Virus record (IMG/VR): IMGVR_UViG_3300032236_001613
Location: 248,001-312,000 of that record
Length of the DNA stretch: 64,000 bases
Direction: 5' to 3' (one strand)
Part shown: positions 11,196 to 64,000 of the stretch, piece by piece
Numbering within the stretch: position 1 is the first letter of the stretch
Layout: every line of letters begins with the position of its first letter
The notes under the pieces: model-generated
What the model was told of the DNA's origin: nothing
Databases searched by the model: none
What the model saw: the letters and a program-made list of their open reading frames with translations, nothing else
Translations under genes and position numbers: made by a program

Positions 11196-11215
11196 ATTTT
11201 AAGATAAATAATTAT

Positions 11216-11542
11216 ATGTCGACATATTCGGCATATAATTATATGAGTCGCCCAAAACCTAATGTTTTATTAGAAATTACAAATAAAAAAACTTATAAAA
11301 CCGAACAAGTTTTAGAAGCAGAGGCTATTTGGGCAGTCTTTTATAAAGATAAACCTGTTAATCTTAAAACCAGTTCGATTGTAGCCCAACAACTAGGTCC
11401 AAAGTATAAAAAAGTATCTTTTTCTAATGCCGGTCATGCACATAATCTTGCAGAAAAACTAAACAAGTTGTATAATTGCGAAGATTTTTCAGTATACAAA
11501 CTAACTACAGGTCAAAAGATTTCGGATGGATATAAAACATAA
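11216..11542 (+). CDS. Hypothetical protein (possibly leaderless; alternative start 11243)
   Basis: TAAATA at 11205-11210, 5 nt before the ATG. Confidence 0.75.
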   Translation: MSTYSAYNYMSRPKPNVLLEITNKKTYKTEQVLEAEAIWAVFYKDKPVNLKTSSIVAQQLGPKYKKVSFSNAGHAHNLAEKLNKLYNCEDFSVYKLTTGQKISDGYKT

Positions 11543-11933
11543 GTTAACCGTAGAATTTTTAACCAATTGGCTCGGATATGAGCCAACTGCTTTGGTTATC
11601 GAAAAATATTATCAAAAATGGTGGAAAAACATTAGAGAAAATGGCGAGCGTAGTCTTCGGTTAACATACGATGGTTTTACTTTTTTAAAAAACAACAACC
11701 TTTTAAAATTTTATCAAATTGACGTACTAGATGTTGTTTATACTAGCAAAGTAATGCTTCAACTAGACAAGTATCTAGTTTGTCCTTGGTATTTGTCTAG
11801 TAATAGCACAATATGGGTAAGCAGAGAAAAAACGGCTGTAGAATTAATTTTGTTCGGCGGCGATTTAGTAAAATACGGAAACTCAAAATATCAATCAGAA
11901 CTTATGTCCAAAGAAAATTCATTGACTTTGTAG
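11526..11933 (+). CDS. Hypothetical protein
   Basis: 135-aa ORF in operon context. Confidence 0.7.
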   Translation: MDIKHKLTVEFLTNWLGYEPTALVIEKYYQKWWKNIRENGERSLRLTYDGFTFLKNNNLLKFYQIDVLDVVYTSKVMLQLDKYLVCPWYLSSNSTIWVSREKTAVELILFGGDLVKYGNSKYQSELMSKENSLTL

Positions 11934-11949
11934 CATAAGAGCGTATAAT
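11922..11949 (+). promoter_or_regulatory. Sigma70-type promoter for the MoxR/VWA pair
   Basis: TTGACT, 16 bp spacer, TATAAT. Confidence 0.75.
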
Positions 11950-11992
11950 AATCTAGGTAAAGTTGTTACACTAACCATACAGGTATTTTTAT

Positions 11993-13081
11993 ATGGCAGA
12001 AAAAATTTCAGCGAATCGTACCGTTACACCAAACGAAGCCAAAAAGAGCATTCGTAAATGTATTAAAATTAAACGTCCTGTTTTTTTATGGGGCCCGCCA
12101 GGCATCGGCAAGAGCGATATTGTTAAACAAATTGGCAACGAACAGAATCGTGACGTTATTGACGTTCGACTAAGTCTTTGGGAACCTACCGATATTAAAG
12201 GTATTCCTTATTACAATTCTCAACTTAATACTATGAGTTGGGCACCTCCAGCAGAACTTCCAACTGATCCAAATAGTACTGCTATTTTATTCTTAGATGA
12301 GCTTAATTCAGCGGCACCTGCAACGCAAGCTGCAGCTTATCAGTTGGTGTTGAATCGTCGTGTTGGCACTTACCGTTTGCCTGATGGTGTCAGTATCGTG
12401 GCTGCAGGCAACCGTGAAACAGATAAAGGTGTTACTTATCGTATGCCAGCTCCGTTGGCGAATCGTTTCCTTCATCTTGAACTTTCAACTGATTTTGAAG
12501 ATTGGCTCAAATGGGCAACTGACAATATGATCCACGAACAAGTTGTTGGCTATGTTAGCTTTGCTAAACAGGATCTTTACAACTTTGATCCTAAGAGCCC
12601 GAGCCGTAGTTTTGCAACTCCTCGCTCATGGAGCTTTGTAAGCGATTTGCTTACCGATGACGACCTTGAAGATGATACACTAATGGATCTTGTATCAGGA
12701 GCTATTGGAGAAGGACTTGCACACAAATTTATGGCGCATCGTAAAGTTGCTAAACAAATGCCTAACCCAGAAGATATTCTTTCTGGTAAGATTACAAAAT
12801 GCTCAATTAAAGAAATTAGTGCAATGTATTCATTAGGTATTAGTCTCTGCTACGAGCTCAAAGGAGCTGCAGATAAAAAAGCTAAAAATTGGGATGCACT
12901 TGCTGATAATTACTTCCGCTTTTTGATGGATAACTTTCCTACGGAACTTACAGTTATGTCAGCTAAGATTGCATTGACTAATTACAATCTTCCATTTGAT
13001 ACTAGTAAACTTAAAAACTTTGACGAATTCCATGAAAAATACGGTAAGTATATTCTTACTGCAATGGACCAAGCGTTTTGA
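11993..13081 (+). CDS. MoxR-like AAA+ ATPase
   Basis: Walker A GPPGIGKS, Walker B LFLDELN, AAGNR, PLANRF, TPRSW. Confidence 0.92.
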   Translation: MAEKISANRTVTPNEAKKSIRKCIKIKRPVFLWGPPGIGKSDIVKQIGNEQNRDVIDVRLSLWEPTDIKGIPYYNSQLNTMSWAPPAELPTDPNSTAILFLDELNSAAPATQAAAYQLVLNRRVGTYRLPDGVSIVAAGNRETDKGVTYRMPAPLANRFLHLELSTDFEDWLKWATDNMIHEQVVGYVSFAKQDLYNFDPKSPSRSFATPRSWSFVSDLLTDDDLEDDTLMDLVSGAIGEGLAHKFMAHRKVAKQMPNPEDILSGKITKCSIKEISAMYSLGISLCYELKGAADKKAKNWDALADNYFRFLMDNFPTELTVMSAKIALTNYNLPFDTSKLKNFDEFHEKYGKYILTAMDQAF

Positions 13082-13085
13082 TTTG

Positions 13086-13103
13086 TGGGCCCGCAAGGGC
13101 CCA
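13086..13103 (+). terminator. GC-rich GNRA hairpin (weak terminator or mRNA stabiliser)
   Basis: TGGGCCC-GCAA-GGGCCCA; only a weak U-tail follows. Confidence 0.5.
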
Positions 13104-13124
13104 TCTTAATTAAGGAAAAATGTA

Positions 13125-14387: not shown

Positions 14388-14398
14388 GTAGGTACAAA

Positions 14399-14680: not shown

Positions 14681-14688
14681 GAGATAAT

Positions 14689-14904: not shown

Positions 14905-14913
14905 GGAAAATTT

Positions 14914-18291: not shown

Positions 18292-18315
18292 TGTTTTTAA
18301 TCCACTCTATTTAAT

Positions 18316-19914: not shown

Positions 19915-19924
19915 TCTCTATTCC

Positions 19925-21841: not shown

Positions 21842-21846
21842 AATTT

Positions 21847-22478: not shown

Positions 22479-23147
22479 TTAGCTTCCATTAGTTAAACTT
22501 TGTATTCTAACTGTATAATCAATCTGTATTAGTCTGTTTAATGCCTTTTGAACCGGATGAAAAATCACATGCGTTAATAACGGTCCAGTATTTTCACCTG
22601 CAGGATTATATCCTTTGAGTCCTAATTCATCAAAAACAAAATTGTTTGTATTACTTACACTAGCATCAAATGCAGGTTGCCCTGCTGGTTCGCCGTAATC
22701 TAACAGACAACTTACTAACACATCAGAGTAATACGTGCCTGGTACGTGCCTTACTTCCATAAAATTCCTTGAAGGATCTAAATCATAAGGATTATTAGCG
22801 TCAACAACTTTATAATACGTTTGATTATAAAGAGCTGCATTTGAACCTACATTGTTAGGTGTTAGATAGGTAATAATACCTGTAGGGTCTATTCTACTAC
22901 CACCATTACCAAATGCCATTTCTGAAATAAAATTTTGACCCAAATTAGCTACACTATTAGCTAAAGAAATAGAAAAGTTTTCGTAATGAATTGCGTTTCT
23001 TTTATCTACGAAAATTTCTTTAGTAGTCGGATCGTAAATTTTTATGTGGCCCTGAATACGTAATGCTCCTGTTTCATTAGGTTTTTCATTAGTTGGCGTT
23101 GGTGTTTGCATAAATTTCTTCATATTTTTGTTATTAGAATTGTCCAT
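22479..23147 (-). CDS. Virion structural protein (baseplate/fibre attachment)
   Basis: MAFGNGG, FDELGL, HPVQK..NR.IQIDYTVRI; located between the giant baseplate gene and the fibres. Confidence 0.65.
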   Translation of the reverse strand: MDNSNNKNMKKFMQTPTPTNEKPNETGALRIQGHIKIYDPTTKEIFVDKRNAIHYENFSISLANSVANLGQNFISEMAFGNGGSRIDPTGIITYLTPNNVGSNAALYNQTYYKVVDANNPYDLDPSRNFMEVRHVPGTYYSDVLVSCLLDYGEPAGQPAFDASVSNTNNFVFDELGLKGYNPAGENTGPLLTHVIFHPVQKALNRLIQIDYTVRIQSLTNGS

Positions 23148-26100
23148 AGTAATATTTATCAGGGAATGTACTTGGGTTATCCTGCAAGAATGTAGAGAAT
23201 AAACTATTGTCGTTAAGTACAGAAGTTCCGGTATTTCTATACATATTATTGATTGCTAACCTTTGAACTAACATAATTTCTGTACCTGTTTTAATATTAG
23301 GCAAATTAAGAGTCAATGTTGCAGTGCTTATACTTCCATTAGAAACAATACCTGAAATAGTGAATTCTTCTGGATAGTAATCTAATCCGCTGTAAATATA
23401 TCCATTTACTGCATTTGTAAGCTTAGAATTAGTATATACCCAGACCTGATTAGTCGAAGTTACTAAGTAAGCATCGTTTACAAATTTTGTTAAAACTAAT
23501 GTACTAGTAGTACTCGTCGTTCCTAACAGATTAATATCTCCGCTATCATAACTTATATCAGTATTTTGTTTATAAATTCCGGCTTTTCTTAACAACTTTC
23601 CGCCATAATATACTAACAATTGATCTGCTGCAGTTGCAGTAGTTAACAGTGTTCCGTTTATTACATAAGAAATGGCATTAGTAGCAGTTAATTTTTGTTT
23701 TACAAATGTCTCTTGATACGGAGCATTTTGCTTATAACTTTGGTCTATAACTGCTGTTCCTACAAGATATGCATCTTTTGGCCCAGTACCGAGCGAACCG
23801 CGACGTAAATCGCTTAATTCATTACCGTTAATTGTCAAATATTCAATCCATTCGCCATCAATTAACACAGCTCCGGGTATTTTTTTAGCTAAATTTGGTT
23901 CAGCTAACACGCTGCCGTCTTGTACAACAATTTTTGTAGATGTCGAATATAAAGTCTCAGCTAGATAAGTTGTATTACCTTTGCTAATTCGTTTAAATTG
24001 ATTACGTCCTAATAAATCAGTAAAAACTCTATAACCTACACTATTTTTTTCTATAGTATTATCAGACATACTCATAATCGATACTAACTGATTTGGTATA
24101 TATGGATAATCTTCTCTGAGAACAACCATAGTTCCTGTATCATCGAGATAAAAATCAACAGTATTAATTAATGGACTATTACCGATAGTTACCCAAATGT
24201 ATCTCGAATTTAATAGTTTTCTAGTAAGAGGATATTTTCCTGAAGGTCTTGAAAGGTAAGTTTCTTCTCTAATTAAACTAGTATCACCGTCAGTAAAATC
24301 GATAACTTTGAGTAAATCATTAACTTGATAATTCGCAGTTGGTTTGATGTAAACATATCCATTAGCAAAATAATAATCGCTAAAAGTATGATTAGTGATT
24401 GCCATTGCATCGCCTGTTTGTAAGAACCCAGGTTTAAACAATATTTGATTGCTATCTTGGTCTAACACAAAATCTATACCGTTTCTTAACTTGATTCCGT
24501 TTACATAAACCTCTAAATGTGCAAGATCAAATGTTCCTGGAGGATAATTATTAGCCGGATCAATTAAAAATGCAGTTTCTCCGGCAGATACTGAATAATA
24601 TACAGTGCTAGGAGACATTAATCGTCTATTATTAATTTCTACAATAGCTTGCGAGTTAGCTGATCCGTGTTTTCCTGGATAAATTGTTAACAGATAACTT
24701 GTTGTAACACCATCGCCAACAAATGTCTGTTCATTTACCGTACTAAATTTATTTCCTCCACTAGTGAAGGACCAAGCTTGCAATGTATAATTTCCAAGAG
24801 CTAAGTTACTTACATATAAGCGTCCTCTTGATAAAGTATATTCCGTAGTTGATAATCTTCTACCATTTAATGTTGCATAAATGCTGCCAATTTCGTTAAT
24901 TGTGCCAACATGCACACTTAATGCTGTTACATTAGAACCATTAGCGTAGTCATAGTAATTAAACTGATACCCTCCGACTCCAATCACAGAAACGCCCAAT
25001 ATACCAGTAATTGGTTGAGGATTGACTATTACATCTTGATTGATAAAGTCAATAGTATAATCTCGCCCATAAGTTAAAACTGTATCGTTATAATACACCA
25101 TTGTCGATGCTGTATTTGGAGGCAACATCGGTAACGCAACTATTGTATTTGTAACAGTTTGATTAATTTGAATAACTGATTGGGTGATCATCGGACTACC
25201 ACTTTCGGCTCTAGTGTAAACACTAATTCCAACACTTTCGTACATTTCACCTTTAATTTGCTCTTCTGGAGCATAGCTAGTGTATATTGATACAAATTTA
25301 TCAGCATCAATGATAGTGTCGCTAGGGTTAACTCCGGCAGCAGTCGTATATGATAAATTACCACCATCTAAAATAGTATCTAATACACCCGGAGTAGTAT
25401 TGTATTCCCAAAATTCTAATCTAACTGTATTTGATATTATCTGATCTGCGGTAGATGTACTAAAAATAACACTGTTAGATAGTGTGTTAATACCTGTTAC
25501 AACTACGTTTGATGATAAAAACTTATTATTATTTGTAGTTAACGTAGTTAGTGCTACGGTAGTTACACGTAACCCTGCGGTAATTCCTTGCAATGTGTTT
25601 ACAACTAATGTATCTGTACCTGTTGCTGCAGTTGTTATTACAGTTGCTGTAGTATAGAAATTTGAATCATCGCCATATAATGACTTACCAAATGGTGCCA
25701 TATCCCAGTTTGTGGTATAATCAAACTCCAATCCTTGAATTTGAGATCCAGGAAACTCAACACCGCTCATCAATTGAGCAAGATCGTTACCAGGCATACC
25801 TACTGTCGGAGAATAATAATTCTGTATTCGATCTACTGCATGGAATAATTCAATATTTTTATTATAGGAAATTACTAATGTCGTTCCAGTTGAAGGAATT
25901 GAATTTAAAACAATGTTAGAGAATAACTTATGATACCCGTTGACAACTTTTTTATATGTATCAATTGAATACTCTGTAGCTAATATTCTGTGTCCTGTAC
26001 TAGTTGTATTATATAATGTAACTTCTATATTTGCTTTTTTATTTTCAGCTGCCCAACTTAAAGGAAAATTGTAAGTACGATTGTCGCCTTTGAAACTTTC

Positions 26101-39636: not shown

Positions 39637-40077
39637 TTATTGGAGAATTAACCCAAGCTCTTTGTTAAAAGCTAAGGATAAATTCTCTGTTTGATCAGAA
39701 CCTACAACCTGAAGTGTAAGTTCAAGTAGAATTCCGTATTCTTGTTCGTCGATAATTATTTGTACTGGAACAACTCTAGGATCTGCATTAACAATTCTGT
39801 TAATATCATCAGAAATTACTTGCTTGATACTATCTGTAAATGGTTCAAATATTGTTTCCCATATTATAGTACCAAACTCCGGCAGCATAACACGCTCGCC
39901 TTGTCTAGTATTAAACTGATTTATAAGATCTTGCTTAATTAAATCATAATCATAAAGTCTAGTATCACCTAATGTACCAACATTTACTGAACTATACCCG
40001 ACATAAAACTGACTTGTTTTCTGTGGATTTGTTGAACTGTACTGGGTTGGATTAAGTTCTAGATTTTTATAAGGCAT
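39637..40077 (-). CDS. Baseplate wedge subunit (gp25-like)
   Basis: LIKQDLIN...TRQGERVMLPEFG...DPRV. Confidence 0.9.
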   Translation of the reverse strand: MPYKNLELNPTQYSSTNPQKTSQFYVGYSSVNVGTLGDTRLYDYDLIKQDLINQFNTRQGERVMLPEFGTIIWETIFEPFTDSIKQVISDDINRIVNADPRVVPVQIIIDEQEYGILLELTLQVVGSDQTENLSLAFNKELGLILQ

Positions 40078-40088
40078 ACGTTTATTTA

Positions 40089-47184: not shown

Positions 47185-48102
47185 ATGACAATAACAATAA
47201 CACCCACCGGAAGAAAGGTAAAATATTTAAACAATAGAGACTTATTAGCAGAAATCCATAGAAGTAAATGTAGTTATTCTAGCTTTTCTAGCCCCGAATA
47301 TAATCAATACGACATCATATTAACTAGCCTCGATAAGATTAATATAAGAACAATAGCCGAAGCAAAACGTAATAGAGCTAAAAGATTAGGTCTTGAAGCA
47401 TTTAATTTAGCAAGGATTGGCGGAGATAAAAAGATTAAACTTACAGACTGCACTCCTGATTATAAAACCATTGCTAAAAATGATATTATTATTAGAATAA
47501 TGACTTTTGATCACATTCCACTTTCCCCAAATCGTAAAAAGACTGCTAAAACTACTGCAGATCGTCATGAGAAGGTAAATTTTCCTCCTTTTCAACACTG
47601 GAAGTTTAATGATAACGACGAATTAGAGTGCGTAGGTAAAAGTCATTGGAAAGGCACATTAGATAACGGCAAGTTTAGTAAAGATCACGGAAGAATTACA
47701 GAAAATCTAGGCAGAATGTATATCAAATTAAGCGAGAGATATGCACAACGTAGTAACTGGAGAGGTTATACTTACGTTGACGAAATGCGTGGCCAAGCAA
47801 TTCTGCAGTTAAGCCAAATTGGATTACAGTTTGACGAATCAAAAAGCGAAAACCCATTCGCATATTACACAGCAGCAGTAACTAATTCGTTTACTCGTGT
47901 ACTTAATCTAGAGAAAAAGAGCCAAAATATTAGAGACGATTTACTCGAAGTTAACGGACTGACCCCAAGCCTAACTCGTCAAACACGGGATGAATTTGCT
48001 GACGAAACTGCAAAGCAAGCAGAAATTTACAAAAATACTCGCATGCCAAAAAGTAACGAAAGCGATTTTGCTTCAGAGGACGACTCATCAGAAAACGATT
48101 GA
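47185..48102 (+). CDS. Late-transcription sigma factor (T4 gp55-like)
   Basis: YLNNRDLL, NWRGYTYVDEM, FDESKSENPFAYYT...F.R.L..EKK; adjacent to gp47/gp46 as in T4. Confidence 0.85.
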   Translation: MTITITPTGRKVKYLNNRDLLAEIHRSKCSYSSFSSPEYNQYDIILTSLDKINIRTIAEAKRNRAKRLGLEAFNLARIGGDKKIKLTDCTPDYKTIAKNDIIIRIMTFDHIPLSPNRKKTAKTTADRHEKVNFPPFQHWKFNDNDELECVGKSHWKGTLDNGKFSKDHGRITENLGRMYIKLSERYAQRSNWRGYTYVDEMRGQAILQLSQIGLQFDESKSENPFAYYTAAVTNSFTRVLNLEKKSQNIRDDLLEVNGLTPSLTRQTRDEFADETAKQAEIYKNTRMPKSNESDFASEDDSSEND

Positions 48103-49159: not shown

Positions 49160-50946
49160 CAAACATTGAACTTGAAAGTATGACACTTAAGAATTTCATG
49201 AGCGTAGGTAATCAAACGCAATCCATAAATTTCAAAAGTGACTTCTTAACTTTGGTTTTAGGTACTAACCTCGATCTTGGTGGAGAAGATACCGGTAGCC
49301 GTAACGGAACAGGTAAAACTACAATGGTTAATGGATTAAGTTACTTGTTCTACGGCGAAGCATTATCGAGAATTAAGAAAGAAAATTTAATTAATAAAAC
49401 TAACGGTAAGAATATGCTGCTTACCGGATCGTTTCGAGTAAACGGCGTAAGACATCGTATTGAAAGAGGAAGAAAACCTACTTTTCTTAAACTTTATATC
49501 GACGATAAAGAACATGTTGGTAAAGATGAAGAAGAATCTCAAGGCGATAGTCGAGAAACTCAAAAATATATCGAAAATGTAATCGGTATGAGCCACACAA
49601 TGTTTAAACACATTGTGGCTCTCAACACTTATACAGAACCATTCCTTAGTTTAAAGGCTGCTGACCAACGAGAAGTTATTGAAGAACTTATCGGAAGCAC
49701 AATGTTAAGCACTAAGGCAGAATCTCTAAGACTACTAATTAAAGAAAATAAAGATGCGATTGCTGCTGAACAGATAAAAATTGATAGCATTAAAAATGCT
49801 AACGAAGGTATTCAACGTAGTATTAATTCTTTAATTCTTAAAAAAGACACGTGGGATAAGAAAAAAGATACAGACTTAATGGAGCTAGCTAATGCAATTT
49901 CCGAACTAGAAAGTTTAGATATTAATGCCGAACTTGAAGCACATAAAAATCTAAAAGTATGGAAAGATAATAATACTCAACTGCAAAATCTAAAAAAGCA
50001 AAAAGCTAGTGCGGATTTATCTTTAGTACAAGCTGATAGAAATGTTAAAAAATATACTGCAGAATTGGAAAAGTTAGCAGACAATAAGTGTCCTCAGTGT
50101 GAGCAAGACTTGCACAATGACACACATATTAACTTACTTGCTAATGCTGAAAAGAATTTGTCCGATGCTGTCGATTATTACAATACCGTAAAGAATAATA
50201 TTGATGAGCTAAACACTCAAATTAATACTATTGGAGATATCGGTACATGTCCTACGACATTCTATGCAACTGAAGCAGAGGCGTTGGGGCATCAAAATCA
50301 ATTAACAAATTTAGAACAAGCATTAATCGACCGTAACTCACAAATTAATCCCTATACAGATCAGATTGAGGAGTTGGAAAAAACTGCCTTGCAAACTATA
50401 TCTTGGGATAAGATTAATGAGTTGACAAAATTAAAAGAGCATCAAGACTTTTTACTTAAACTATTAACTAACAAAGATAGTTTTATTCGTAAAAAGATCA
50501 TTGATCAAAATCTCGCGCATTTAAATCATAGACTTAGTTACTATTTGGATAAGCTAAAACTTCCGCATCTAGTTAAATTTAAAAATGATTTAGAAGTAGA
50601 GATTACAGATTTTGGTAAAGACCTAGACTTTGACAACCTTTCTAGAGGTGAACGCAACAGACTTATCTTAAGTATGAGCTTCGCTTTCAGAGATGTTTGG
50701 GAAAGTTTATACCAAAGTGTTAACTTGTTGTTTGTTGACGAGTTAATGGACTCAGGTATGGACTCTGCTGGAGTCGAAGCAGGGTTAAGATTATTAAAAG
50801 AAATGGCTCGTGAAGGCGGTAAAAACATTTACTTGATTTCTCATAAAGATGAATTAGTCAGTAGAGTTGACAGTATCTTGAGAGTAGTTAAAGAAAATGG
50901 TTTTACCTCGTATTCAAATTCGACCGAGCCGGTGGGATTAGTATGA
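49156..50946 (+). CDS. Recombination ATPase subunit (gp46, Rad50/SbcC-like)
   Basis: KNFMSVG, NGTGKTT, CPQC zinc hook, LSRGE signature, LFVDE, ISHK; ATGA overlap at 49156. Confidence 0.95.
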   Translation: MTNIELESMTLKNFMSVGNQTQSINFKSDFLTLVLGTNLDLGGEDTGSRNGTGKTTMVNGLSYLFYGEALSRIKKENLINKTNGKNMLLTGSFRVNGVRHRIERGRKPTFLKLYIDDKEHVGKDEEESQGDSRETQKYIENVIGMSHTMFKHIVALNTYTEPFLSLKAADQREVIEELIGSTMLSTKAESLRLLIKENKDAIAAEQIKIDSIKNANEGIQRSINSLILKKDTWDKKKDTDLMELANAISELESLDINAELEAHKNLKVWKDNNTQLQNLKKQKASADLSLVQADRNVKKYTAELEKLADNKCPQCEQDLHNDTHINLLANAEKNLSDAVDYYNTVKNNIDELNTQINTIGDIGTCPTTFYATEAEALGHQNQLTNLEQALIDRNSQINPYTDQIEELEKTALQTISWDKINELTKLKEHQDFLLKLLTNKDSFIRKKIIDQNLAHLNHRLSYYLDKLKLPHLVKFKNDLEVEITDFGKDLDFDNLSRGERNRLILSMSFAFRDVWESLYQSVNLLFVDELMDSGMDSAGVEAGLRLLKEMAREGGKNIYLISHKDELVSRVDSILRVVKENGFTSYSNSTEPVGLV

Positions 50947-52261: not shown

Positions 52262-52269
52262 TATAAATA
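52262..52269 (+). promoter_or_regulatory. T4-type late promoter
   Basis: Exact TATAAATA before ATG 52294. Confidence 0.65.
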
Positions 52270-52293
52270 AATTTATTGCTGTAGGATATTAAA

Positions 52294-53007
52294 ATGAAAT
52301 TATCTGATGTGTTTTCCGAAAGTGCTCTTAATGAGTTAGGGATTATTAAATCTTTTAAAGCTGGATATCGAGCAGGTAAAAATAAAGTTCTAAATTTACC
52401 AACCGGATCACAAGTCGATAACGAACCAGCGCAAGCAACAACTAATCAAGCTGCACAACAGCAGCCTGCTCAACAGCCAAATGCTCAAAATACAACACAA
52501 CAACCTTCTCGCACAACGACACAAGCAGCAACTACTCCAGCGGAACCACCTACCGCTGCACAAAACATTGCATCTCAACAAGCACTTAATCAAAAATTAT
52601 CGGCAGGTAATCAAAACACTAACGATTATCTTAAAAGTATAGCTGCACAGATAAAGTCTGAGCCAGATACTAACAAGAAAATTGAATTAGGTAGAGAATT
52701 AATTAACTTTGTTGCAGATCGTCATAGTCAGCCTAACTGGGGGACTTTATCAGGCGTAGCTGGCAGTATAATTAAAAAGAATATACCGGATCCAAATTTT
52801 GTTAAGCCAGCATTAGAAAAAATTAAGGACGGTGGACATATCGGTACTGACGAATTAGAATCCATAAATTACATGCTTGAAACTGTAGGATTAAGCCTAT
52901 TAGACTTAGGATTAGAAGCTGTTCTAACAGAAAGCAAAGGTTCTTATATTTTAAGACGTGTAGTAGATACATCTATTTTAGATTTACGTAAGCTAGCAGG
53001 ACTATAA
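52294..53007 (+). CDS. Hypothetical protein, probable internal head protein
   Basis: Late promoter; Gln/Ala/Thr-rich linker; C-terminal LRKLAGL motif shared with the scaffold protein. Confidence 0.6.
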   Translation: MKLSDVFSESALNELGIIKSFKAGYRAGKNKVLNLPTGSQVDNEPAQATTNQAAQQQPAQQPNAQNTTQQPSRTTTQAATTPAEPPTAAQNIASQQALNQKLSAGNQNTNDYLKSIAAQIKSEPDTNKKIELGRELINFVADRHSQPNWGTLSGVAGSIIKKNIPDPNFVKPALEKIKDGGHIGTDELESINYMLETVGLSLLDLGLEAVLTESKGSYILRRVVDTSILDLRKLAGL

Positions 53008-54136: not shown

Positions 54137-54166
54137 TCTACGCAGTTAACCTGGAATTTTAAATAC

Positions 54167-56284
54167 ATGGCACCAGTATCGGGTACATTCGGAGATCAAC
54201 AAGTAAATCTTGAAAATGCAGCTACAGAAGCTACATTACAAAAATTACTAGTTGCTATTACCGCAACTAGCAAAGAAGCTGCGGATGCTGTTGCTAAAAT
54301 GGCAAAAAATGCTGGATTAGATCCAGAAAAAGTTAAACTTACAACAGCGTCTTTAACTGAATTAGAAAAATCTGCTGCTATTTTAGGTGGTGCATATGCT
54401 GGGTTAGAATACGCCAGTGATCAGTTAAAAGCTAAATTAACAGCCGCTGCAGGTCTTGTTGGTACTTTTACTTCTGGTACTGGCAAAGCTAGTGATTTAT
54501 TTGGAGCTTTAGGAAAATTACCTGGACCTTTAGGCCTTGTCGGTACAGGATTTCAATTAGTATCTCAGTTTCAAGAACAACTTTTAAAAAGTTATCAAGA
54601 AATAAGTGCTTCGGGTGTTAATTTTAGCGGTAGTCTTATACAAATGCGAGTAGCTGCATCTAGCATGTACTTGTCAATGGACCAGTTTAGTACTTTAGTA
54701 AAAAAGAATTCTGAATCATTTATTAATCTCGGCGGTGGAGTTGATAAGGGATTTCAAACTTTTTCTAGATTAAGCAATAATTTGATTAATAGTCAACTAG
54801 GTGATCGTTTACTATCGTTAGGATATAGTTTTGAAGAAATAAATCAAGGATTAGCTAGCTATATCGGAATGAGTGGACCACGTAGGGCCATAGACTTAGC
54901 TGATGAAAAAACTAAAGCAGCAATACTTACATCGTCGTCTGAATACTTAGAAAATTTAAATGCATTATCTGAAATTACTGGTAAAAGTCGAGACAAACAG
55001 CAAGAAGAGCTAGATGCTGCTAGTAAAAATGCTGCTTTTCAAGCTAAACTAGCAACTATGTCGGAGGACGAACGTAAAAAAGCATTAGCAGGAATGGCAA
55101 ATGCATTAGCAATCGGTGGAAAAGGTGCTGTTGATGCGTTCCAATCTAAGTTAATGGGAATAGCACCAGATAAAGCCGGTGCCTTATTCCTTGCTACTGC
55201 AAGTAATGCAGCAAGAGTAGTTGAAGATTCTGTTGATATGGTTTATAATACTAGTATTGGTGTAAAACAAATGGCTAGTACTACATTAAGAGAAGGGCTC
55301 AAAGCTGCTGGTCTTGATTTTCAAAAATTTTCTAATCAAACATTATATGCAATTATAAGACAAGGCGGACCACTCGCTGATAGCTTACAGCAATTAGGGA
55401 TTACAGCAAACAAAGCATCTACTATGACTGAAGAGCAAATACAGCAGATAATTGATAAAGCTGATGCCGATAGTAATGCTGCTGCCGAAGCTAGAGAAGC
55501 AGCCGAAAATCAAAAAGAAATTATGAAGATGGGACAAGAGTTATTAAAAGATTTAATGCCTATTTTCCGTGATTTAAAACCTTTAATACCTGGATTTTTA
55601 AGAAGTGTTACAGATATGATAGGGTTAATTAATAAAATTCCTGGTGGTTTAACAACATTGCTCGAAGCTATCGTAGCATTTTCTATTGGATCGAATGTGC
55701 TTAAAGGAGCATCTGCAGTTAAAAGTCTTATAAACGCCGGAGGTGCTGCTGCTGCTATTGGAAAAGAAGTTCCGGTTCTTACCGAAGCAGTTACTGCCGG
55801 TAAGGTTGCAACTAGCGCCGCTACCGGTACCGGGTTATTGGCTAAAGGCTCTGCTAAGTTGGGCGGTAAAATGCTATCTAAATTCATACCTGGTATTGGA
55901 TTACTTGCTGGCGGAGCTGATGCCTATATGAGATTAGGAGAAGGAGATTATTTTGGAGCAGGACTAGCAGCAGCAGGAGGACTTGCCTCGTTAATACCCG
56001 GTGTTGGCGGAATAGTAGCAGCTGGATTTGACGTAGCAAATTTAGCAAGAGACTTGCATAAAAAGTCTGACGATAATAAAAAAGAAGAAAAATCCAAAAA
56101 AGATGATGCAAGCATACTTGATAATAAGGATGACGATATTAATAAAGAATTAATAACCGAATTAAAACGGTTAAATACAATATCCGAAAATATGCTGCAT
56201 ACAATGCAACTAGTATCAAACGATATGAAACGCAGTGTTAGTGCTATTAATGGGTTAAACAAAAATTTATATCCTGTGAGTTAA
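54167..56284 (+). CDS. Tape measure-like protein
   Basis: Ala/Gly/Leu-rich helical sequence with hydrophobic Gly-rich C-terminal segments; adjacent to the chaperone gene. Confidence 0.65.
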   Translation: MAPVSGTFGDQQVNLENAATEATLQKLLVAITATSKEAADAVAKMAKNAGLDPEKVKLTTASLTELEKSAAILGGAYAGLEYASDQLKAKLTAAAGLVGTFTSGTGKASDLFGALGKLPGPLGLVGTGFQLVSQFQEQLLKSYQEISASGVNFSGSLIQMRVAASSMYLSMDQFSTLVKKNSESFINLGGGVDKGFQTFSRLSNNLINSQLGDRLLSLGYSFEEINQGLASYIGMSGPRRAIDLADEKTKAAILTSSSEYLENLNALSEITGKSRDKQQEELDAASKNAAFQAKLATMSEDERKKALAGMANALAIGGKGAVDAFQSKLMGIAPDKAGALFLATASNAARVVEDSVDMVYNTSIGVKQMASTTLREGLKAAGLDFQKFSNQTLYAIIRQGGPLADSLQQLGITANKASTMTEEQIQQIIDKADADSNAAAEAREAAENQKEIMKMGQELLKDLMPIFRDLKPLIPGFLRSVTDMIGLINKIPGGLTTLLEAIVAFSIGSNVLKGASAVKSLINAGGAAAAIGKEVPVLTEAVTAGKVATSAATGTGLLAKGSAKLGGKMLSKFIPGIGLLAGGADAYMRLGEGDYFGAGLAAAGGLASLIPGVGGIVAAGFDVANLARDLHKKSDDNKKEEKSKKDDASILDNKDDDINKELITELKRLNTISENMLHTMQLVSNDMKRSVSAINGLNKNLYPVS

Positions 56285-56287
56285 AAT

Positions 56288-58030: not shown

Positions 58031-58045
58031 AATATAAATAAGAAT

Positions 58046-58291
58046 ATGCTATTAAGAGAATTTGTATACTTTGATGCAGACGAAGCCGGGATGAAAGAGA
58101 AGAATCGCTATGATTCCGATCATGATTTAAGCATCTTAAAGATGAGCGATCTTAGAAAAAGCCGTTTAACTCTACGCATGTTAAACGATTTACGTAAAGC
58201 AGGCGATGCTAAAGAGAAAGAACAAAAAGAAGATCTAGAGCTAGTAAGAAAAATGTACGCAGCACCTGCACCACAACAAGGTGCAATGTAA
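58046..58291 (+). CDS. Small head-associated protein
   Basis: Lies between portal and core genes; TATAAATA at 58033-58040. Confidence 0.7.
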   Translation: MLLREFVYFDADEAGMKEKNRYDSDHDLSILKMSDLRKSRLTLRMLNDLRKAGDAKEKEQKEDLELVRKMYAAPAPQQGAM

Positions 58292-58429
58292 AATTATAAA
58301 AATTTGAGATTTTTCTATCTCAAAGACCAAAATCTTCAGTTTTTGGCCTATTTGGCATAAGTATTCTACAATGTCTGTAAATAATAAACGACAGCCTTGC
58401 TAGTTTTTAAAACATAAGGAGACCACGCA

Positions 58430-59446
58430 ATGTCTAATAAATTTGAAAAGTTACTAGACTATCTAGTCAACGAAGAGCATGAAAAAGCTAACGAGCTTTT
58501 CCATGAGATCGTTGTAGAAAAGTCAAGATCAATCTACGAAAATCTAATTTCTGAAGAAGCTGATGACGAGGAAATGGACGAGTCACGCGAAGAAGATGAC
58601 GAGGAAATGGACGAGTCACGCGAAGAAGATGACGAGGAAATGGACGAGTCACGCGAAGAAGATGACGAGGAAATGGACGAGTCAATGATGGACGACGAAG
58701 AAATGGATGAGTCAATGATGGACGACGAAAGCATGTACGAAATCGGCGGAGATGCATCCGACGATATGGTCGGTGACGTTTCAGATGATTCAATGGACGG
58801 CGGCATGGGCGGCATGGACGATATGCACGACCTAGGCGACGAACCAAGCCTTGGCACCGAATTAGGTAGCGAAGGTACAGAACAGAATTTACTTGATAAA
58901 CTCGATCAGCTAGAAGCCAAGCTTGATGCAATCATTGCTGGTGAAAAGCATGAAGAAGAGGAAAATCCAGATATTCACGGTCATGAAATGGACAGTCTAA
59001 CCACTAGCGACGAAGACGAATCGGACGATATGGATATGGATATGGACAGCGAAGAAGACAGTGAAGAAGAAGATGAAGAAGATATGGACGAACAGCTAGT
59101 ACGTGAGTACAGAGAAATCGTTCGTAAAGGCAAAGATTACACAGCCGGAAGTCCAAACGAGGAAGGTAGTGTACATAAGAAGAGTGCTATTAACACCAAT
59201 CTATCAAGTCTACCAAGTTCAAAAGCAAATGCTAAAAACATTGCTCAGAACGGTAAAGGTGATAGCGAAGACGGAAATAAGACCAATATGGGTCCTAATG
59301 CCAAGAGTCTTGCTGGTGGCGTAAAAGGTAAGTTTACTGACGGGTCGACATTAAATGTTGACGGAAAGCAAACTAAGGGTTACGACAAGAGCACTAAGAA
59401 GCCAGCTAAGGAAAAGAGCGTTAATAGTAAAGACGTTCTTCCATAA
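58430..59446 (+). CDS. Highly acidic prohead core protein (gp67/gp68-like)
   Basis: Asp/Glu-rich; located between portal and protease; AAGGAG RBS. Confidence 0.7.
   Translation: MSNKFEKLLDYLVNEEHEKANELFHEIVVEKSRSIYENLISEEADDEEMDESREEDDEEMDESREEDDEEMDESREEDDEEMDESMMDDEEMDESMMDDESMYEIGGDASDDMVGDVSDDSMDGGMGGMDDMHDLGDEPSLGTELGSEGTEQNLLDKLDQLEAKLDAIIAGEKHEEEENPDIHGHEMDSLTTSDEDESDDMDMDMDSEEDSEEEDEEDMDEQLVREYREIVRKGKDYTAGSPNEEGSVHKKSAINTNLSSLPSSKANAKNIAQNGKGDSEDGNKTNMGPNAKSLAGGVKGKFTDGSTLNVDGKQTKGYDKSTKKPAKEKSVNSKDVLP
58562..58729 (+). repeat. In-frame tandem repeat (33-nt unit, DDEEMDESREE)
   Basis: GATGACGAGGAAATGGACGAGTCACGCGAAGAA occurs three times exactly (58562-58660), followed by degenerate DDEEMDESMM units. 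Confidence 0.95.
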
Positions 59447-59458
59447 TAAGGAACAGGG

Positions 59459-60088: not shown

Positions 60089-60105
60089 CCTTAAAGGGAG
60101 ATGTG

Positions 60106-61197: not shown

Positions 61198-61218
61198 CTA
61201 TTATTCAAGGAGACATTA

Positions 61219-62394
61219 ATGTCACAGTTATTAAATGAAAGATGGTCCGAGACAAAGGAAGCTCTGCTTGAAGGCCTATCGGGTAATCGTCGTGCTTCTA
61301 TGCAGGTTTGCTTAGAGAACACACGCAAGTACTTGGCAGAAGCCGCAACAGCAGGAGCAACAAGCTCTGGTAACGTAGCAACACTTAATCGTGTTATTCT
61401 ACCAGTTATCAGACGTGTAATGCCAACAGTTATTGCCAACGAAATCATCGGCGTACAGCCAATGACAGGCCCTGTTGGGCAGATCCACACACTACGTGTA
61501 CGTTACGCCGATGGCGACGGTACTGTAGTAGCTGGCGAAGAAGCACTAAGCCCATTCAAGATTGCTGCTGCTTACTCCGGTAACGGCGTTGACGGCACAC
61601 CAAAAGCCGCTCAAACAGCACAACTTGAAGGTCAACCGGGTAAGAGAATGAGCATCCAGATTCTCAAAGCTCCAGTAGAAGCCAAGAGCCGCAAGCTCTC
61701 AGCTCGTTGGACATTTGAAGCTGCACAAGATGCACAGGCTCAACAAGGTATTGATATTGAAGCAGAAATTATGGCAGCACTAGCTCAGGAAATCACTGTC
61801 GAAATCGACCAGGAAATCCTAACTTCACTACGTGGTTTAGCTTCAGTTGAACAGTCATATGACCAAAGTCTAGTTTCTGGTACAGCAACATTCGTCGGCG
61901 ACGAACATGCTGCACTAGCAATTCAGATCAATCGCGTAAGCAACCTAATTGCACAGCGTACACGTCGTGGCGCAGGCAACTGGGCAGTTGTTTCAAACCA
62001 GGCTCTAACAATTCTACAGTCTGCAACTACAAGCGCATTTGCTCGTACAACAGAAGGTACATTTGAAGCCCCAACTAACACTAAGTTTGTTGGTACACTA
62101 AACGGTGCTATGAAGATCTATGTTGACAGCTACAAGGCTGACAGCGATGACAACAACCAGGTTCTAATCGGATACAAAGGCACAAGCGAAGCTGACGCAC
62201 CAGCGTTCTATTGCCCATACATTCCGCTAATGAGTTCTGGTGTTGTACTAGATCCAGCAACCTTCGAACCAGTCGTAGGCTTCCTAACACGCTACGGTTA
62301 TGTTGAACTCAGCAACACCGCAAGCAGCTTAGGTAACGCAGCTGACTACCTCGGTAAGGTCGCTATCGTAAGCGCAACAGTAAGCTTCAAGTAA
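61219..62394 (+). CDS. Major capsid protein (gp23-like)
   Basis: IRRVMP..IA..IIGVQPMTGPVGQI, AKSRKL.A.WT.E.AQD, YCPYIP, TFEP..GFLTRYG. Confidence 0.98.
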   Translation: MSQLLNERWSETKEALLEGLSGNRRASMQVCLENTRKYLAEAATAGATSSGNVATLNRVILPVIRRVMPTVIANEIIGVQPMTGPVGQIHTLRVRYADGDGTVVAGEEALSPFKIAAAYSGNGVDGTPKAAQTAQLEGQPGKRMSIQILKAPVEAKSRKLSARWTFEAAQDAQAQQGIDIEAEIMAALAQEITVEIDQEILTSLRGLASVEQSYDQSLVSGTATFVGDEHAALAIQINRVSNLIAQRTRRGAGNWAVVSNQALTILQSATTSAFARTTEGTFEAPTNTKFVGTLNGAMKIYVDSYKADSDDNNQVLIGYKGTSEADAPAFYCPYIPLMSSGVVLDPATFEPVVGFLTRYGYVELSNTASSLGNAADYLGKVAIVSATVSFK

Positions 62395-62419
62395 TAAAAT
62401 TACTTGTAAATTTACACAG

Positions 62420-62444
62420 AAAGCCCGCCCTGTGCGGGCTTTTT
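62420..62444 (+). terminator. Rho-independent terminator after the capsid gene
   Basis: AAAGCCCGC-CCTGT-GCGGGCTTTTT. Confidence 0.88.
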
Positions 62445-62467
62445 GCTGATTGTCGATTAAATACAAC

Positions 62468-62671
62468 ATGAGAATAAACGAACTTATATTTGAAATCGGT
62501 GTAGGACAACCAAAAACATTTAAAGGTTCTACATGTACAAAAGATTGCTCGGGTCATACTGCAGGGTATAATTGGGGTAAAAATAAAAATGTTAAAAATC
62601 CTAATAATTGCCCACCAGGCGGAAGCAAAAGTTTTAATAACGGCTGCAAAATTGCAGGTTCCGGTAAATAA
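62468..62671 (+). CDS. Small Cys-rich protein
   Basis: ATG 62468 lies 4 nt after TAAATA; CTKDCSGH.AGY.WG...C...S.SF..GC. Confidence 0.7.
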   Translation: MRINELIFEIGVGQPKTFKGSTCTKDCSGHTAGYNWGKNKNVKNPNNCPPGGSKSFNNGCKIAGSGK

Positions 62672-62675
62672 TAAC

Positions 62676-62746
62676 AGTTCGCTCGAAAAGAGAGTTTATG
62701 CAGTACCCACTGCGTAGATCCTAGAACGATCTTATAAAATAAGGAG
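62676..62746 (+). promoter_or_regulatory. Structured 5' leader (three-way junction plus SD-sequestering hairpin)
   Basis: GTTC/GAAC closes CTC-GAAAA-GAG and GTTTATGCAGT-ACCC-ACTGCGTAGAT; CTTAT/ATAAG overlaps the AAGGAG RBS. Confidence 0.5.
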
Positions 62747-62752
62747 AAACAA

Positions 62753-63424
62753 ATGGGACGTCCGATTAAAAAGAGATTTTTTGCTGGCACAGCAGTTGTT
62801 GCTGACACTGCAGGTATGGGAGTTGTTGCACCAAACGGTGTTGCTATTCTTACAAGTGGTACTAATTTTACTATTGTACCGACAGTAACATTTAGCCAAC
62901 CAGATATTTTAGGTGGTACAGTTGCAACTGGACACGTTACAGTTAACGGAGCTGGTAATCTTGCTAGTTTTGTTGTTGATTCTAGCGGTTCTGGTTATAC
63001 ATTAGATCCTGATATTGTGTTAACAGGTTCAACAGGAACAGGTGCAACATTTAGTGTTACATTAGCAGGAGTTAGTAATACAGGAAAAATTACAACTTCC
63101 GCATACTTACCGAGAAAGTCGTCTGTTGCTAGAACATCAACAATTCTAAAGCAAGAATCGAGTCATCGTTATCTTGTGCAAAACAGAGACGGTGACGGCA
63201 TTTGTAAATTAACTGCATCTGGTAGTTTAACTGCTGGTCAAATGAGTATTACTGCAACTGATAGCGCAGGTGGTACATATTATGTAACAAAGTTAACATC
63301 TCGTAAAGCATTGTTAACTCCGATTAACGGAACACAGTTTCCTACTAACACTTATGCAAAATGGTTACGTTCTAGTGACGGCTCGCCAGTTGCAAATGTT
63401 AGTGTAACTATTCCTGTTGCTTAA
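62753..63424 (+). CDS. Virion structural protein (possible head decoration protein)
   Basis: MGRPIKK N-terminus; SGSGYT beta repeats like those in the giant protein; downstream of the capsid gene. Confidence 0.65.
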   Translation: MGRPIKKRFFAGTAVVADTAGMGVVAPNGVAILTSGTNFTIVPTVTFSQPDILGGTVATGHVTVNGAGNLASFVVDSSGSGYTLDPDIVLTGSTGTGATFSVTLAGVSNTGKITTSAYLPRKSSVARTSTILKQESSHRYLVQNRDGDGICKLTASGSLTAGQMSITATDSAGGTYYVTKLTSRKALLTPINGTQFPTNTYAKWLRSSDGSPVANVSVTIPVA

Positions 63425-63444
63425 TACGTTATTTTAAATAACAT

Positions 63445-63475
63445 AAAAATAGCTGCCTTGTGCAGCTATTTTTTT
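63445..63475 (+). terminator. Rho-independent terminator (potentially bidirectional)
   Basis: AAAAATAGCTGC-CTTGT-GCAGCTATTTTTTT. Confidence 0.88.
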
Positions 63476-63489
63476 GGTTAAATAAGAAT

Positions 63490-64000
63490 ATGTCAACTGA
63501 TTGGTCATACTCAACTATAATAACTCAATATGCTGAAGTAGAGCAGCATATCCCGTGGAAAGATAACGGAACAAATTTTGTTGATGCAATGTATTGCGAT
63601 AATAGTTTTTTAGAAACTACCTCACCTTTATTGCATATTTCAAGAACTCCTAATAATGATTTAAAAATGAAAACCTGGTTTCTTAAGTTTACCGGGTTTT
63701 CATTTAATAATCTTCCATTATCAATTTCAGGTTTAGAAGCAGAATTAGGTATGAATAGGGAAGGTAGAATTACTGATGAAACTATTCAACTAACTTATAA
63801 TAATACGGACATTGGAAAAAATCAAGCAGATTTTCGATTGGATATGTTTAAATTATATGGCGGACCTAACGATCTTTGGGATTTTAGTTTAACTAGCACA
63901 GTAATAAATGATCCTAGTTTCGGTATTATTTTAAGATTTCAAAGTCATCCTAGTTGGCCTCATAAATCAACGCCGATGATCGACTACATACGGCTGAGAG
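63490..64000 (+). CDS. Hypothetical (probably virion) protein, 3'-truncated; absent from the ORF track
   Basis: Open from ATG 63490 (MSTDWSYSTIITQY...YGGPNDLW...FGIILRFQSHP...) to the window end; TAAATA at 63479-63484. Confidence 0.8.
   Translation, partial: MSTDWSYSTIITQYAEVEQHIPWKDNGTNFVDAMYCDNSFLETTSPLLHISRTPNNDLKMKTWFLKFTGFSFNNLPLSISGLEAELGMNREGRITDETIQLTYNNTDIGKNQADFRLDMFKLYGGPNDLWDFSLTSTVINDPSFGIILRFQSHPSWPHKSTPMIDYIRLR

Follow-up and report, generated by a model that had tools for sequence, protein, structure and literature searches.

In a 328-kb freshwater giant phage related to T4 (IMG/VR record IMGVR_UViG_3300032236_001613) and in about 160 contigs of uncultured relatives, roughly one gene in ten, mostly virion genes, has the putative late-promoter box TAAATA fixed 5 nt before its ATG with no ribosome-binding site. 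This points to mRNAs that begin at the start codon, though the start sites are inferred from sequence, as a search for sequencing runs holding this DNA found only DNA metagenomes, from freshwater and lake samples, with one probable source sample. The arrangement was first noticed in a window of 64,000 nt (positions 248,001 to 312,000 of the record), where a first-pass annotation listed five genes with the box exactly 5 nt before the ATG and a sixth with a 4-nt spacing, and proposed that transcription starts on the A of the ATG. The observation is real, with all six sites present and each ATG being the first, or first plausible, start of an ORF (Table 1). The interpretation is only partly supported. 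While every indirect test that could be run favours leaderless late mRNAs, the further suggestion that two translation modes set virion protein stoichiometry has no support beyond the coexistence of both gene classes. The annotation could not show that the trait covers about 10% of all genes, nor that it is specific to this lineage.

Table 1. Features in the 64,000-nt window associated with TAAATA boxes close to, or further from, start codons.
Position	Strand	Feature	Supporting observations
1957..1987	+	Leadered configuration: TAAATA box 22 nt before the ATG at 1985, with an AAGGAA SD	
11205..11218	+	Box (11205-11210), 5-nt spacer ATTAT, ATG of a 108-aa ORF (11216-11542) of unknown function	Upstream gene ends at 11195; no PHROG or Pfam hit
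22479..23158	-	Box (23158-23153), spacer TTACT, ATG (23147) of a 222-aa gene; box to ATG 23145-23158	phrog_11259; the box lies inside the 3' end of the 4340-aa gene, whose stop overlaps this start by 14 nt
39637..40088	-	Box (40088-40083), spacer AACGT, ATG (40077) of a gp25-like baseplate wedge protein (146 aa); box to ATG 40075-40088	phrog_43, 3e-17; 11-nt gap to the upstream gene
47185..48102	+	gp55-type late sigma factor (305 aa), the likely reader of the TAAATA box	T4 gp55 E 1.3e-8; phrog_12791 'sigma factor for late transcription' 8e-86; followed by gp47-like (48146-49159) and gp46-like (49144-50946) genes, as in T4
52262..52296	+	Leadered configuration: TATAAATA, its TAAATA part ending 24 nt before the ATG at 52294, with a weak SD (AGGA)	
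58035..58291	+	Box (58035-58040, here the full TATAAATA from 58033), spacer AGAAT, ATG (58046) of an 81-aa protein after the portal gene, in the position of T4 gp67 (prohead core); box to ATG 58035-58048	phrog_13986; orthologues in 43 of 43 relatives keep the box at 4-7 nt, 34 of them at 5 nt, with a variable spacer
58378..58432	+	Leadered configuration: TAAATA box 46 nt before the ATG (58430) of a 338-aa head gene, with an AAGGAG SD	
62415..62448	+	Intrinsic terminator hairpin plus U-run after the major capsid gene, ending 9 nt before the next box	Fold -20.4 kcal/mol, z -5.5
62458..62671	+	Box (62458-62463), 4-nt spacer CAAC, ATG (62468) of a 67-aa ORF	Orthologue in L003, a relative's contig, has the box at 5 nt
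63442..63476	+	Intrinsic terminator hairpin plus U-run, ending 2 nt before the next box	Fold -16.4 kcal/mol, z -4.5
63479..64000	+	Box (63479-63484), spacer AGAAT, ATG (63490) of a 172-aa ORF that runs off the end of the window; box to ATG 63479-63492	Orthologues in relatives (MTTNW..., MSTSW...) carry terminator + TAAATA + 4-6 nt + ATG

Spacing between the TAAATA box and the start codon

As a bare pattern the five TAAATA-N5-ATG hits in the window are not significant, as 2.5 are expected and 10 of 100 shuffles reach five. When the ATG is required to open an ORF of at least 60 codons, however, five are observed against 0.04 in shuffles and 0.27 at other offsets in the real sequence. The genome-wide histogram of box-to-ATG distances, which had been suggested as a check, shows a sharp peak, with counts of 9, 23 and 14 at d = 4, 5 and 6 against about 5 elsewhere. 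The count at d = 5 exceeds every one of 200 dinucleotide shuffles, even though TAAATA itself is depleted twofold (316 against 664 +/- 26). Counting only ATGs that open ORFs of at least 50 codons gives 19 at d = 5 against a mean of 1.4 at control offsets (Poisson p about 1e-15). Only ATG is enriched at this spacing (ATG 23, GTG 2 and TTG 2), while SD-led genes use GTG or TTG in 11 of 128 cases; non-AUG starts work poorly without a leader.

The claim that there is no room for a Shine-Dalgarno sequence also held. None of the 32 genes classed as box genes has an alternative SD-led start downstream, the one borderline case being a gene outside the window (genome 113580, d = 4) with GAGGAG just upstream of its box. 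Although the window count taken alone is within the range of shuffles, chance or misannotated starts would seem a most improbable explanation. TAAATA, which the first-pass annotation described as common in AT-rich DNA, is depleted here, the ATG is the first start of the ORF in nearly all cases, and N-termini, boxes and spacing are conserved across relatives whose capsid or terminase is 60-92% identical.

The distance from box to start is bimodal. Of about 319 genes, 32 carry the box at 4-7 nt, 5 at 8-15 nt and 44 at 16-30 nt with an SD, whereas an inverted-box control is flat. In terms of inferred start sites, leaders of 3-10 nt, too short for an SD and too long to be leaderless, are avoided. 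The base before the ATG is T or C in 28 of 28 box genes with d = 5-7, against 41-55% in other gene classes, and in 158 of 171 distinct d = 5 contexts in relatives. RNA polymerase prefers to start at a purine preceded by a pyrimidine. The spacings of 4, 6 and 7 nt do mean that some mRNAs may carry one or two extra nucleotides or lack one.

The box behaves as a signal in DNA. TAAATA is the rarest of the 15 hexamers of its composition (316 against 496-830), it is about threefold depleted on both strands of genes (106 sense, 97 antisense), and 36% of copies lie in the 12.5% of the DNA that is intergenic. Since the box occupies the usual SD position and A/U-rich upstream enhancers exist in bacteria, it might instead act on the mRNA as a non-SD ribosome-binding or enhancer element, but this is very unlikely. 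The equal antisense depletion fits a DNA signal rather than an RNA one, the same box lies 16-30 nt upstream of genes that have their own SD, it matches the late-promoter motif of T4 (PMC2988020) and of CBB/GAP32 (PMC5259590), and the pyrimidine at -1 is a feature of transcription and not of translation. Moreover, several boxes directly follow terminators, so that no nearby upstream promoter could place them inside the mRNA and only read-through transcripts could carry them. Besides the two hairpins in Table 1, which a simple terminator scanner missed but folding confirmed, terminators end 6 and 3 nt before the boxes of the tail-tube-like and terminase genes.

A further alternative is that TAAATA is a late promoter but that the proteins are made mainly from longer read-through transcripts, by termination-reinitiation or by SD-independent, A/U-rich (S1-type) initiation, with the closeness of box and ATG reflecting genome compaction. 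Ten of the 32 box genes lie 20 nt or less after an upstream same-strand gene, one overlapping it, and in many relatives the TAA of the box is the portal stop codon, so such routes could contribute to translation there. Another 80 genes have neither an SD nor a box, so some SD-independent initiation must exist in this system anyway. As the main explanation, however, this is unlikely. Compaction does not explain the fixed 5-nt spacing, the pyrimidine at -1 or the sparsely occupied 8-15 nt zone, nor the same arrangement directly after terminators and at divergent junctions, where no upstream transcript or ORF exists. Eight of the 32 box genes sit at such junctions, one pair within a 38-nt gap. 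When the arrangement is lost, as in the relatives' contigs L166 and L175, an SD-like sequence appears.

Gene classes and conservation among relatives

Most box genes with a PHROG hit are tail, head, connector, terminase or endolysin-like genes, and they include tail fibres, virion proteins, a head-tail adaptor, a tail-tube-like protein, terminase, an endolysin-like protein, a gp25-like protein and a prohead-core-like protein. Most box genes are late or structural, judged from their identity. No pattern of copy number against translation mode emerged that would bear on the stoichiometry idea, as box genes include presumably low-copy proteins (terminase, gp25-like) and possibly high-copy ones (tail-tube-like); the main predictor is being the first gene after a promoter. 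Twelve of the 32 box genes share an N-terminal motif, so some sites may be duplicates rather than independent inventions. Paralogy is not the full explanation, since the other 20 do not share it and unrelated genes (terminase, tail-tube-like, gp25-like) keep the box across relatives.

Megablast against the phage collection found no close DNA relatives. In the 160 contigs of IMG/VR relatives the box and spacing are kept while the spacer varies freely, with pooled counts at d = 5 of 59 and 166 against backgrounds of 0-24. The terminase start keeps the box in 72 of 74 contigs, the two exceptions having an insertion upstream and an SD-like GAGG or AGGA instead, and the small post-portal gene keeps it in 43 of 43. 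The layout was not found in the other phages examined. T4 has no TATAAATA closer than 13 nt to a start, the range being 13-41 nt with a peak at 28 nt, with a leader and an SD. GAP32 and Vibrio phage 2.275.O have 0-2 sites at d = 4-6, no box at 4-6 nt from ORF starts and a hump at 25-36 nt, and their orthologues of the post-portal gene have a leader and an SD. Phosso has 3 bare TAAATA-N5-ATG matches in 469 kb, against 2 for the reversed-pattern control.

A proposed model of leaderless late mRNAs and related systems

We favour, with reasonable confidence, the explanation that TAAATA is the -10-type box of this phage's late promoters, read by host RNA polymerase carrying the phage's gp55-type sigma. 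In T4 the late box TATAAATA spans -13 to -6 (PMC2988020), so a box placed 5 nt before an ATG would put the transcription start on the A of that ATG. Promoter-proximal mRNAs of the 32 or so box genes would begin with AUG, carry no 5' UTR and no SD, and would have to be translated by the leaderless route, in which a ribosome binds the 5'-terminal AUG directly, while the 44 or so genes with the box at 16-30 nt would have a minimal leader just long enough to hold an SD. The analysis itself establishes the motif, its spacing statistics, its conservation, the classes of gene and the presence of the sigma factor, whereas the promoter function of the box, the exact start site and the route of translation are inferred, with the start-site distance extrapolated from T4. 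The arrangement belongs to an uncultured, mostly freshwater subclade of the Rak2/GAP32-like giant myoviruses, and probably reflects a host, or an infected-cell state, that translates leaderless mRNAs well.

The similarity to T4 late promoters lies in an A/T box of the same core sequence at the -10 position without a -35 element, an AT-rich stretch downstream, the box preceding virion genes and the gp55 homologue in T4-like synteny. Here, however, the box is the 6-mer TAAATA (invariant by construction), with no conserved TA in front and no conserved upstream position apart from a weak A at -12, or a T-run where a terminator precedes the box. Searches with the T4 gp45 protein and with Pfam PF02916 gave no hit to the sliding clamp, and neither gp45 nor the co-activator gp33 was found in the relative CBB by its authors (PMC5259590), though divergent analogues cannot be excluded. 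The same paper (Buttimer et al, 2017), which also cites Abbasifar et al (2014) for GAP32, predicted ATAAATA as the late motif of CBB and GAP32. These belong to the same phage group (major capsid protein 67-71% identical) and share the motif and the gp55-like sigma, but the putative leaderless layout is confined to the uncultured subclade.

In Deinococcus-Thermus a -10-type element lies about 6-7 bp before the start codon without a -35 element and yields leaderless mRNAs, alongside a second gene class with GGAG-type SDs (PMC12340547), and leaderless middle and late transcripts are reported for the Thermus phages phiYS40 and P23-45 (Sevostyanova 2007; Berdygulova 2011). Those systems use the host primary sigma and the motif TANNNT, in a phylum where leaderless genes are the norm, whereas here the element is a putative phage late-sigma box in a T4-superfamily phage. 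The lambda cI mRNA from pRM, the classic leaderless phage mRNA, also starts at the A of the AUG and is translated without an SD (PMC10491246), but it is a single regulatory gene expressed at a low level in lysogens, compared with dozens of late and structural genes of a lytic giant phage.

T4-type late transcription and leaderless translation are each well studied, but we found no paper in the library searched that links the two. If the start sites are confirmed, this clade would be a natural case in which a phage sigma's promoter is fused to the start codon for dozens of virion genes. It would give a clean rule for annotating start codons and late genes in a large group of uncultured giant phages (box, 5 nt, ATG, with a pyrimidine at -1), show how 5' UTR architecture shifts between sister lineages (20-30 nt leaders in T4, GAP32 and a Vibrio relative, against 0 or 11-25 nt here), make the translation physiology of an unknown freshwater host, or of the infected cell, directly testable, and offer compact promoter and start-codon cassettes of about 14 bp for expression design.

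A more speculative possibility, which we consider unlikely on present evidence, is that leaderless initiation is a dedicated late-phase translation channel in this phage clade, in which the mRNAs made by fusing the gp55-type promoter to the AUG are read preferentially once the phage has remodelled the host's translation apparatus. Candidate tools in the genome are its own ribosomal protein bS21 and possibly an initiator-like tRNA, whereas searches for IF3 and an S1 domain found nothing. This would couple a transcriptional switch to a translational one, making the layout more than a passive adaptation to a leaderless-friendly host. Searching species-representative genomes with the phage bS21 gave only two weak hits, 48% to a Candidatus Stygibacter MAG and 38% to Brevundimonas, which we rejected as evidence of the host. 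A Bacteroidota-type host looks unlikely, by inference, because about 40% of genes have SDs of at least 5 nt and canonical TTGACA/TATAAT sites occur.

A few sigma70-like TTGACA-N17-TATAAT promoters abut ATGs at 6 nt (8 sites against about 2 at other offsets), the offset expected for a -10 hexamer ending at -7. This is merely suggestive, as it rests on 5-6 genes and the host-type -10 hexamers alone (TATAAT and variants, TANNNT) show no spacing peak. Finally, the first 36 nt of box genes are less structured than those of other genes (p 0.002).

The TAAATA box and its distance from the start codon

The window is positions 248001-312000 of a single viral contig of 328,068 bp with 37% GC, which IMG/VR classes as linear and about 92% complete. 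Its major capsid protein is 67-71% identical to those of Vibrio phage 2.275.O, Sinorhizobium phage Phosso, Cronobacter phage GAP32 and Pectobacterium phage CBB, and the phage is therefore a giant myovirus of the Rak2/GAP32 group within the T4 superfamily. The head module runs portal, an 81-aa gene, a 338-aa gene, a 209-aa gene in the prohead-protease position, a 364-aa gene and the capsid gene, which matches the layout annotated in the relatives. The only sequencing runs found to contain this DNA were DNA metagenomes from freshwater and lake samples, with no RNA run among them.

All five TAAATA-N5-ATG sites, and the single site with a 4-nt spacer, are where the first-pass annotation had placed them, so that its observation holds. 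As a bare 14-mer pattern five hits in the window would be unremarkable, as 2.5 are expected and 10 of 100 shuffles reach 5. Each ATG, however, is the first usable start of a real ORF and, when this condition is applied, 5 sites are observed against 0.04 in shuffles and 0.27 at other offsets. The genome-wide histogram that had been proposed as a check was made on the whole contig, which contains 316 TAAATA sites. ATG is found at offsets of 4, 5 and 6 nt in 9, 23 and 14 cases, respectively, against about 5 elsewhere, and 19 of the 23 at offset 5 open ORFs of at least 50 codons. Offset 5 exceeds all 200 dinucleotide shuffles, even though TAAATA itself occurs at half the expected frequency (316 against 664 +/- 26), and against control offsets in the real sequence the Poisson p is about 1e-15. 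Only ATG, and not GTG or TTG, is enriched at this spacing. Chance or misannotation of the start codons would seem a remote possibility.

A rough gene call gave 319 genes covering 87.5% of the contig; as these calls were made with our own procedure the counts for each class are approximate. Thirty-two of the genes have the box 4-7 nt before their start, which is nearly always the first start codon of the ORF, and none of these has an alternative SD-led start. Of the others, 128 have an SD of at least 5 nt and 76 have a 4-nt SD. The distance from box to start is bimodal, with 32 genes at 4-7 nt, only 5 at 8-15 nt and 44 at 16-30 nt, most of the latter with an SD in the short leader, while the inverted box gives a flat control. 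This is the pattern expected if the box fixes the 5' end of the mRNA. Leaders of 3-10 nt cannot hold an SD and also spoil leaderless initiation, so they would be avoided.

The base immediately before the ATG is T or C in 28 of the 28 box genes with 5-7 nt spacing, as compared with 41-55% in other gene classes, and is T or C in 158 of 171 distinct contexts from relatives. RNA polymerase prefers to start at a purine preceded by a pyrimidine, so this would place +1 on the A of the ATG even where the spacer is 6 or 7 nt. TAAATA is the rarest of the 15 hexamers of its composition (316 against 496-830). Its counts on the sense and antisense strands of genes are similar (106 and 97), against roughly 290 expected for each, and 36% of the copies lie in the 12.5% of the genome that is intergenic. 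Avoidance in both orientations points to a DNA-level signal such as a promoter rather than an element of the mRNA, and we consider it very unlikely that the box acts as an RNA-level enhancer. In addition, though this is weaker support, the first 36 nt of box genes fold less stably than those of other genes (mean -1.3 against about -2.4 kcal/mol, p 0.002).

Surroundings of the box, gene content and the predicted sigma factor

Strong terminator hairpins with U-runs end 9 and 2 nt before the boxes of the genes starting at 62468 and 63490 of the window, and others end 6 and 3 nt before the boxes of the tail-tube-like and terminase genes elsewhere in the genome. Eight of the 32 box genes sit at divergent junctions, and in one case two boxes face outwards within a 38-nt gap. 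Fourteen more have gaps above 20 nt. Translational coupling therefore cannot be the general explanation, though it may contribute at the 10 sites that follow another gene closely, such as that at 23147, which overlaps the stop of the gene for a 4340-aa protein. Read-through transcription combined with coupling or SD-independent initiation remains possible as an alternative overall, but seems unlikely.

The box genes with a family hit are mostly late functions, namely tail fibres and virion structural proteins, a head-tail adaptor and a tail-tube-like protein, the large terminase, a glycoside-hydrolase (endolysin-like) protein, the gp25-like baseplate wedge protein and the small gene after the portal. 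The likely reader of the box is encoded in the window, where an ORF matches both T4 gp55 (E 1.3e-8) and the PHROG family 'sigma factor for late transcription' (8e-86), and is followed by gp47-like and gp46-like genes, as in T4. A gp45 clamp was not detected in our searches for one. The authors of the CBB genome likewise found a gp55-like gene but no gp33 or gp45, and predicted ATAAATA as the late motif of CBB and GAP32 (PMC5259590). In T4 the first T of TATAAATA is placed at -13, which puts the end of the box at -6 (PMC2988020). By this geometry five spacer bases would put +1 on the next base, as the first-pass annotation had argued.

Positions of the features referred to in the text. Coordinates are those of the window or of the whole contig (genome), as marked; L085, L091, L093 and L094 are loci of the same contig, and L166 and L175 are IMG/VR relatives
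Feature	Position	Strand	Description
Major capsid protein gene	window 61219-62394		
gp55-type sigma factor ORF	window 47185-48102		
ORF of 4340 aa	window 23134-36156	-	in the tail/baseplate region; weak CBM_5_12 hit only
Start of the following box gene	window 23147		leaderless-type start
Box gene after a terminator	window 62468		start position
Box gene after a terminator	window 63490		start position
Box 1 nt before an ATG	window 54153-54169		ATG at 54167; gene of 705 aa, virion or peptidase-like
Proteins with the shared N-terminus (17)	window 58046 and 62468; genome 48300, 49972(-), 51025(-), 52281(-), 81772, 84468, 86458(-), 86871(-), 87307, 88280(-), 89161, 125779, 214910 and others		
bS21 homologue	genome 151806-152012 (L091:11806-12012)	+	68 aa; Pfam PF01165, 57.8 bits
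Large terminase	genome 26682-29255 (L085:6682-9255)		858 aa; LAGLIDADG_3 domain at residues 290-359
tRNA genes	genome about 194.4-204 kb (L093:14408-19372, L094:290-3999), plus 62.2 kb and 84.1 kb		27 genes
Candidate initiator tRNA	genome 200684-200757		CAT anticodon
Contig ends	genome 1-200 and 327869-328068		GGTTAT/ACCGGT-type repeats
Terminase in L166 and L175	locus position 6001		no box
Additional gene in L175	position 5307		230 aa; own TAAATA-N5-ATG, about 0.7 kb upstream of the terminase

Conservation amongst uncultured relatives

To investigate whether the arrangement is conserved, IMG/VR was searched with the capsid and terminase proteins, which returned 160 contigs from uncultured relatives with 77-92% and 60-87% identity, respectively. 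Pooled, these show the same peak, with 59 and 166 ORF starts at offset 5 against backgrounds of 0-24, although, as the contigs overlap in lineage, the pooled counts show conservation rather than independent events. For the small post-portal gene 43 of 43 orthologues keep the box 4-7 nt upstream, 34 of them at 5 nt. For the terminase 72 of 74 keep it, 71 at exactly 5 nt and typically in the order terminator, 3-4 nt, TAAATA, N5, ATG. The five spacer bases vary freely. In the two exceptions, the relatives L166 and L175, something has been inserted upstream, and an SD-like GAGG or AGGA now precedes the ATG of the terminase; in L175 an extra gene with its own box lies about 0.7 kb upstream. This amounts to a natural swap experiment.

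The control genomes behave differently. T4 has 32 perfect TATAAATA boxes lying 13-41 nt from ORF starts, with a peak at 28 and none closer than 13. GAP32 and Vibrio phage 2.275.O have 0-2 sites at offsets 4-6 and a hump at 25-36 nt, while Phosso has 3 bare TAAATA-N5-ATG matches in 469 kb, against 2 for the reversed-pattern control. The GAP32 and Vibrio orthologues of the post-portal gene have an SD, and in GAP32 the box lies about 40 nt upstream. The layout is thus a derived trait of one uncultured subclade.

Interpretation and further features of the genome

The best-supported model, which we consider likely though well short of certain, is that TAAATA is the gp55-type late promoter box and that in about 32 genes it is placed so that transcription starts on the A of the ATG, producing leaderless late mRNAs, while about 44 further genes use the same box with a minimal SD-bearing leader. 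The spacing of the box, its conservation and the classes of gene that it precedes are shown by the sequences; promoter activity, the exact start of transcription and leaderless translation are inferred from them, in the absence of any direct measurement of a 5' end. The interpretation in the first-pass annotation is partly supported. Its further proposal, that two modes of translation tune virion stoichiometry, is neither supported nor refuted: the capsid, scaffold-position and protease-position genes are SD-led internal genes of operons, while the box genes are by construction promoter-proximal and include both low-copy and possibly high-copy proteins.

A smaller second class may also exist. 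Among 89 strong TTGACA-N16-18-TATAAT sites the distance to an ATG peaks at 6 nt, with 8 sites against about 2 at other offsets, 5 of them opening real ORFs, plus one at 5 nt. Six is the offset expected for a -10 hexamer ending at -7. This hints that early, host-sigma transcripts can also be leaderless, which would favour a host-level capacity for such translation. However, the numbers are small and -10 hexamers alone show no peak, so that this is suggestive only.

Leaderless phage mRNAs are known from lambda cI and are reported for the middle and late genes of Thermus phages. A -10 motif 6-7 bp before ORFs is an experimentally validated mode of expression in Deinococcus-Thermus (PMC12340547). 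The transcript maps of PhiKZ and AR9, on the other hand, found no leaderless phage mRNAs. We found no paper connecting gp55 or T4-type late promoters with leaderless transcripts, though the literature searched did not cover subscription journals and this is not proof of novelty. Leaderless phage mRNAs are thus already known, and what would differ here is their inferred origin from a gp55-type late promoter.

The phage encodes a homologue of the ribosomal protein bS21, which may bear on how the late mRNAs are translated. Phage bS21 genes have been described in freshwater giant phages, where they lie next to the head genes (PMC9723584), whereas here the gene lies far from that module. ARAGORN finds 27 tRNA genes, including three with a CAT anticodon. 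From inspection of the sequence, one of these three has a U1:U72 mismatch and two of the three G:C pairs typical of initiator tRNA, and it may be a phage initiator tRNA.

Seventeen proteins of varied size and C-terminus share an N-terminus of the form M-[RLK]-[IL]-x-[ED]-[LFI], followed within about 10 residues by [LIVF]-x-E, and twelve of the 17 are box genes. This resembles the T4 capsid-targeting sequence that is cut by the prohead protease. They may be internal head proteins, and they include a glycoside hydrolase and an HNH/EndoVII-like nuclease. The large terminase is longer than the approximately 528 aa seen in most relatives, and the extra ~330 aa contain the LAGLIDADG_3 domain, so this is probably an intein with a homing endonuclease. 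Three relatives (L136, L137 and L141) carry a similarly long gene.

The box that lies only 1 nt before the ATG of the virion or peptidase-like gene does not fit either spacing class; a second box is found 47 nt further upstream. The repeats of which both ends of the contig consist appear, by eye, to code for collagen-like tail-fibre repeats of the Gly-Tyr-x-Gly-Ser-Ile type, and the assembly probably broke inside a repetitive fibre gene.
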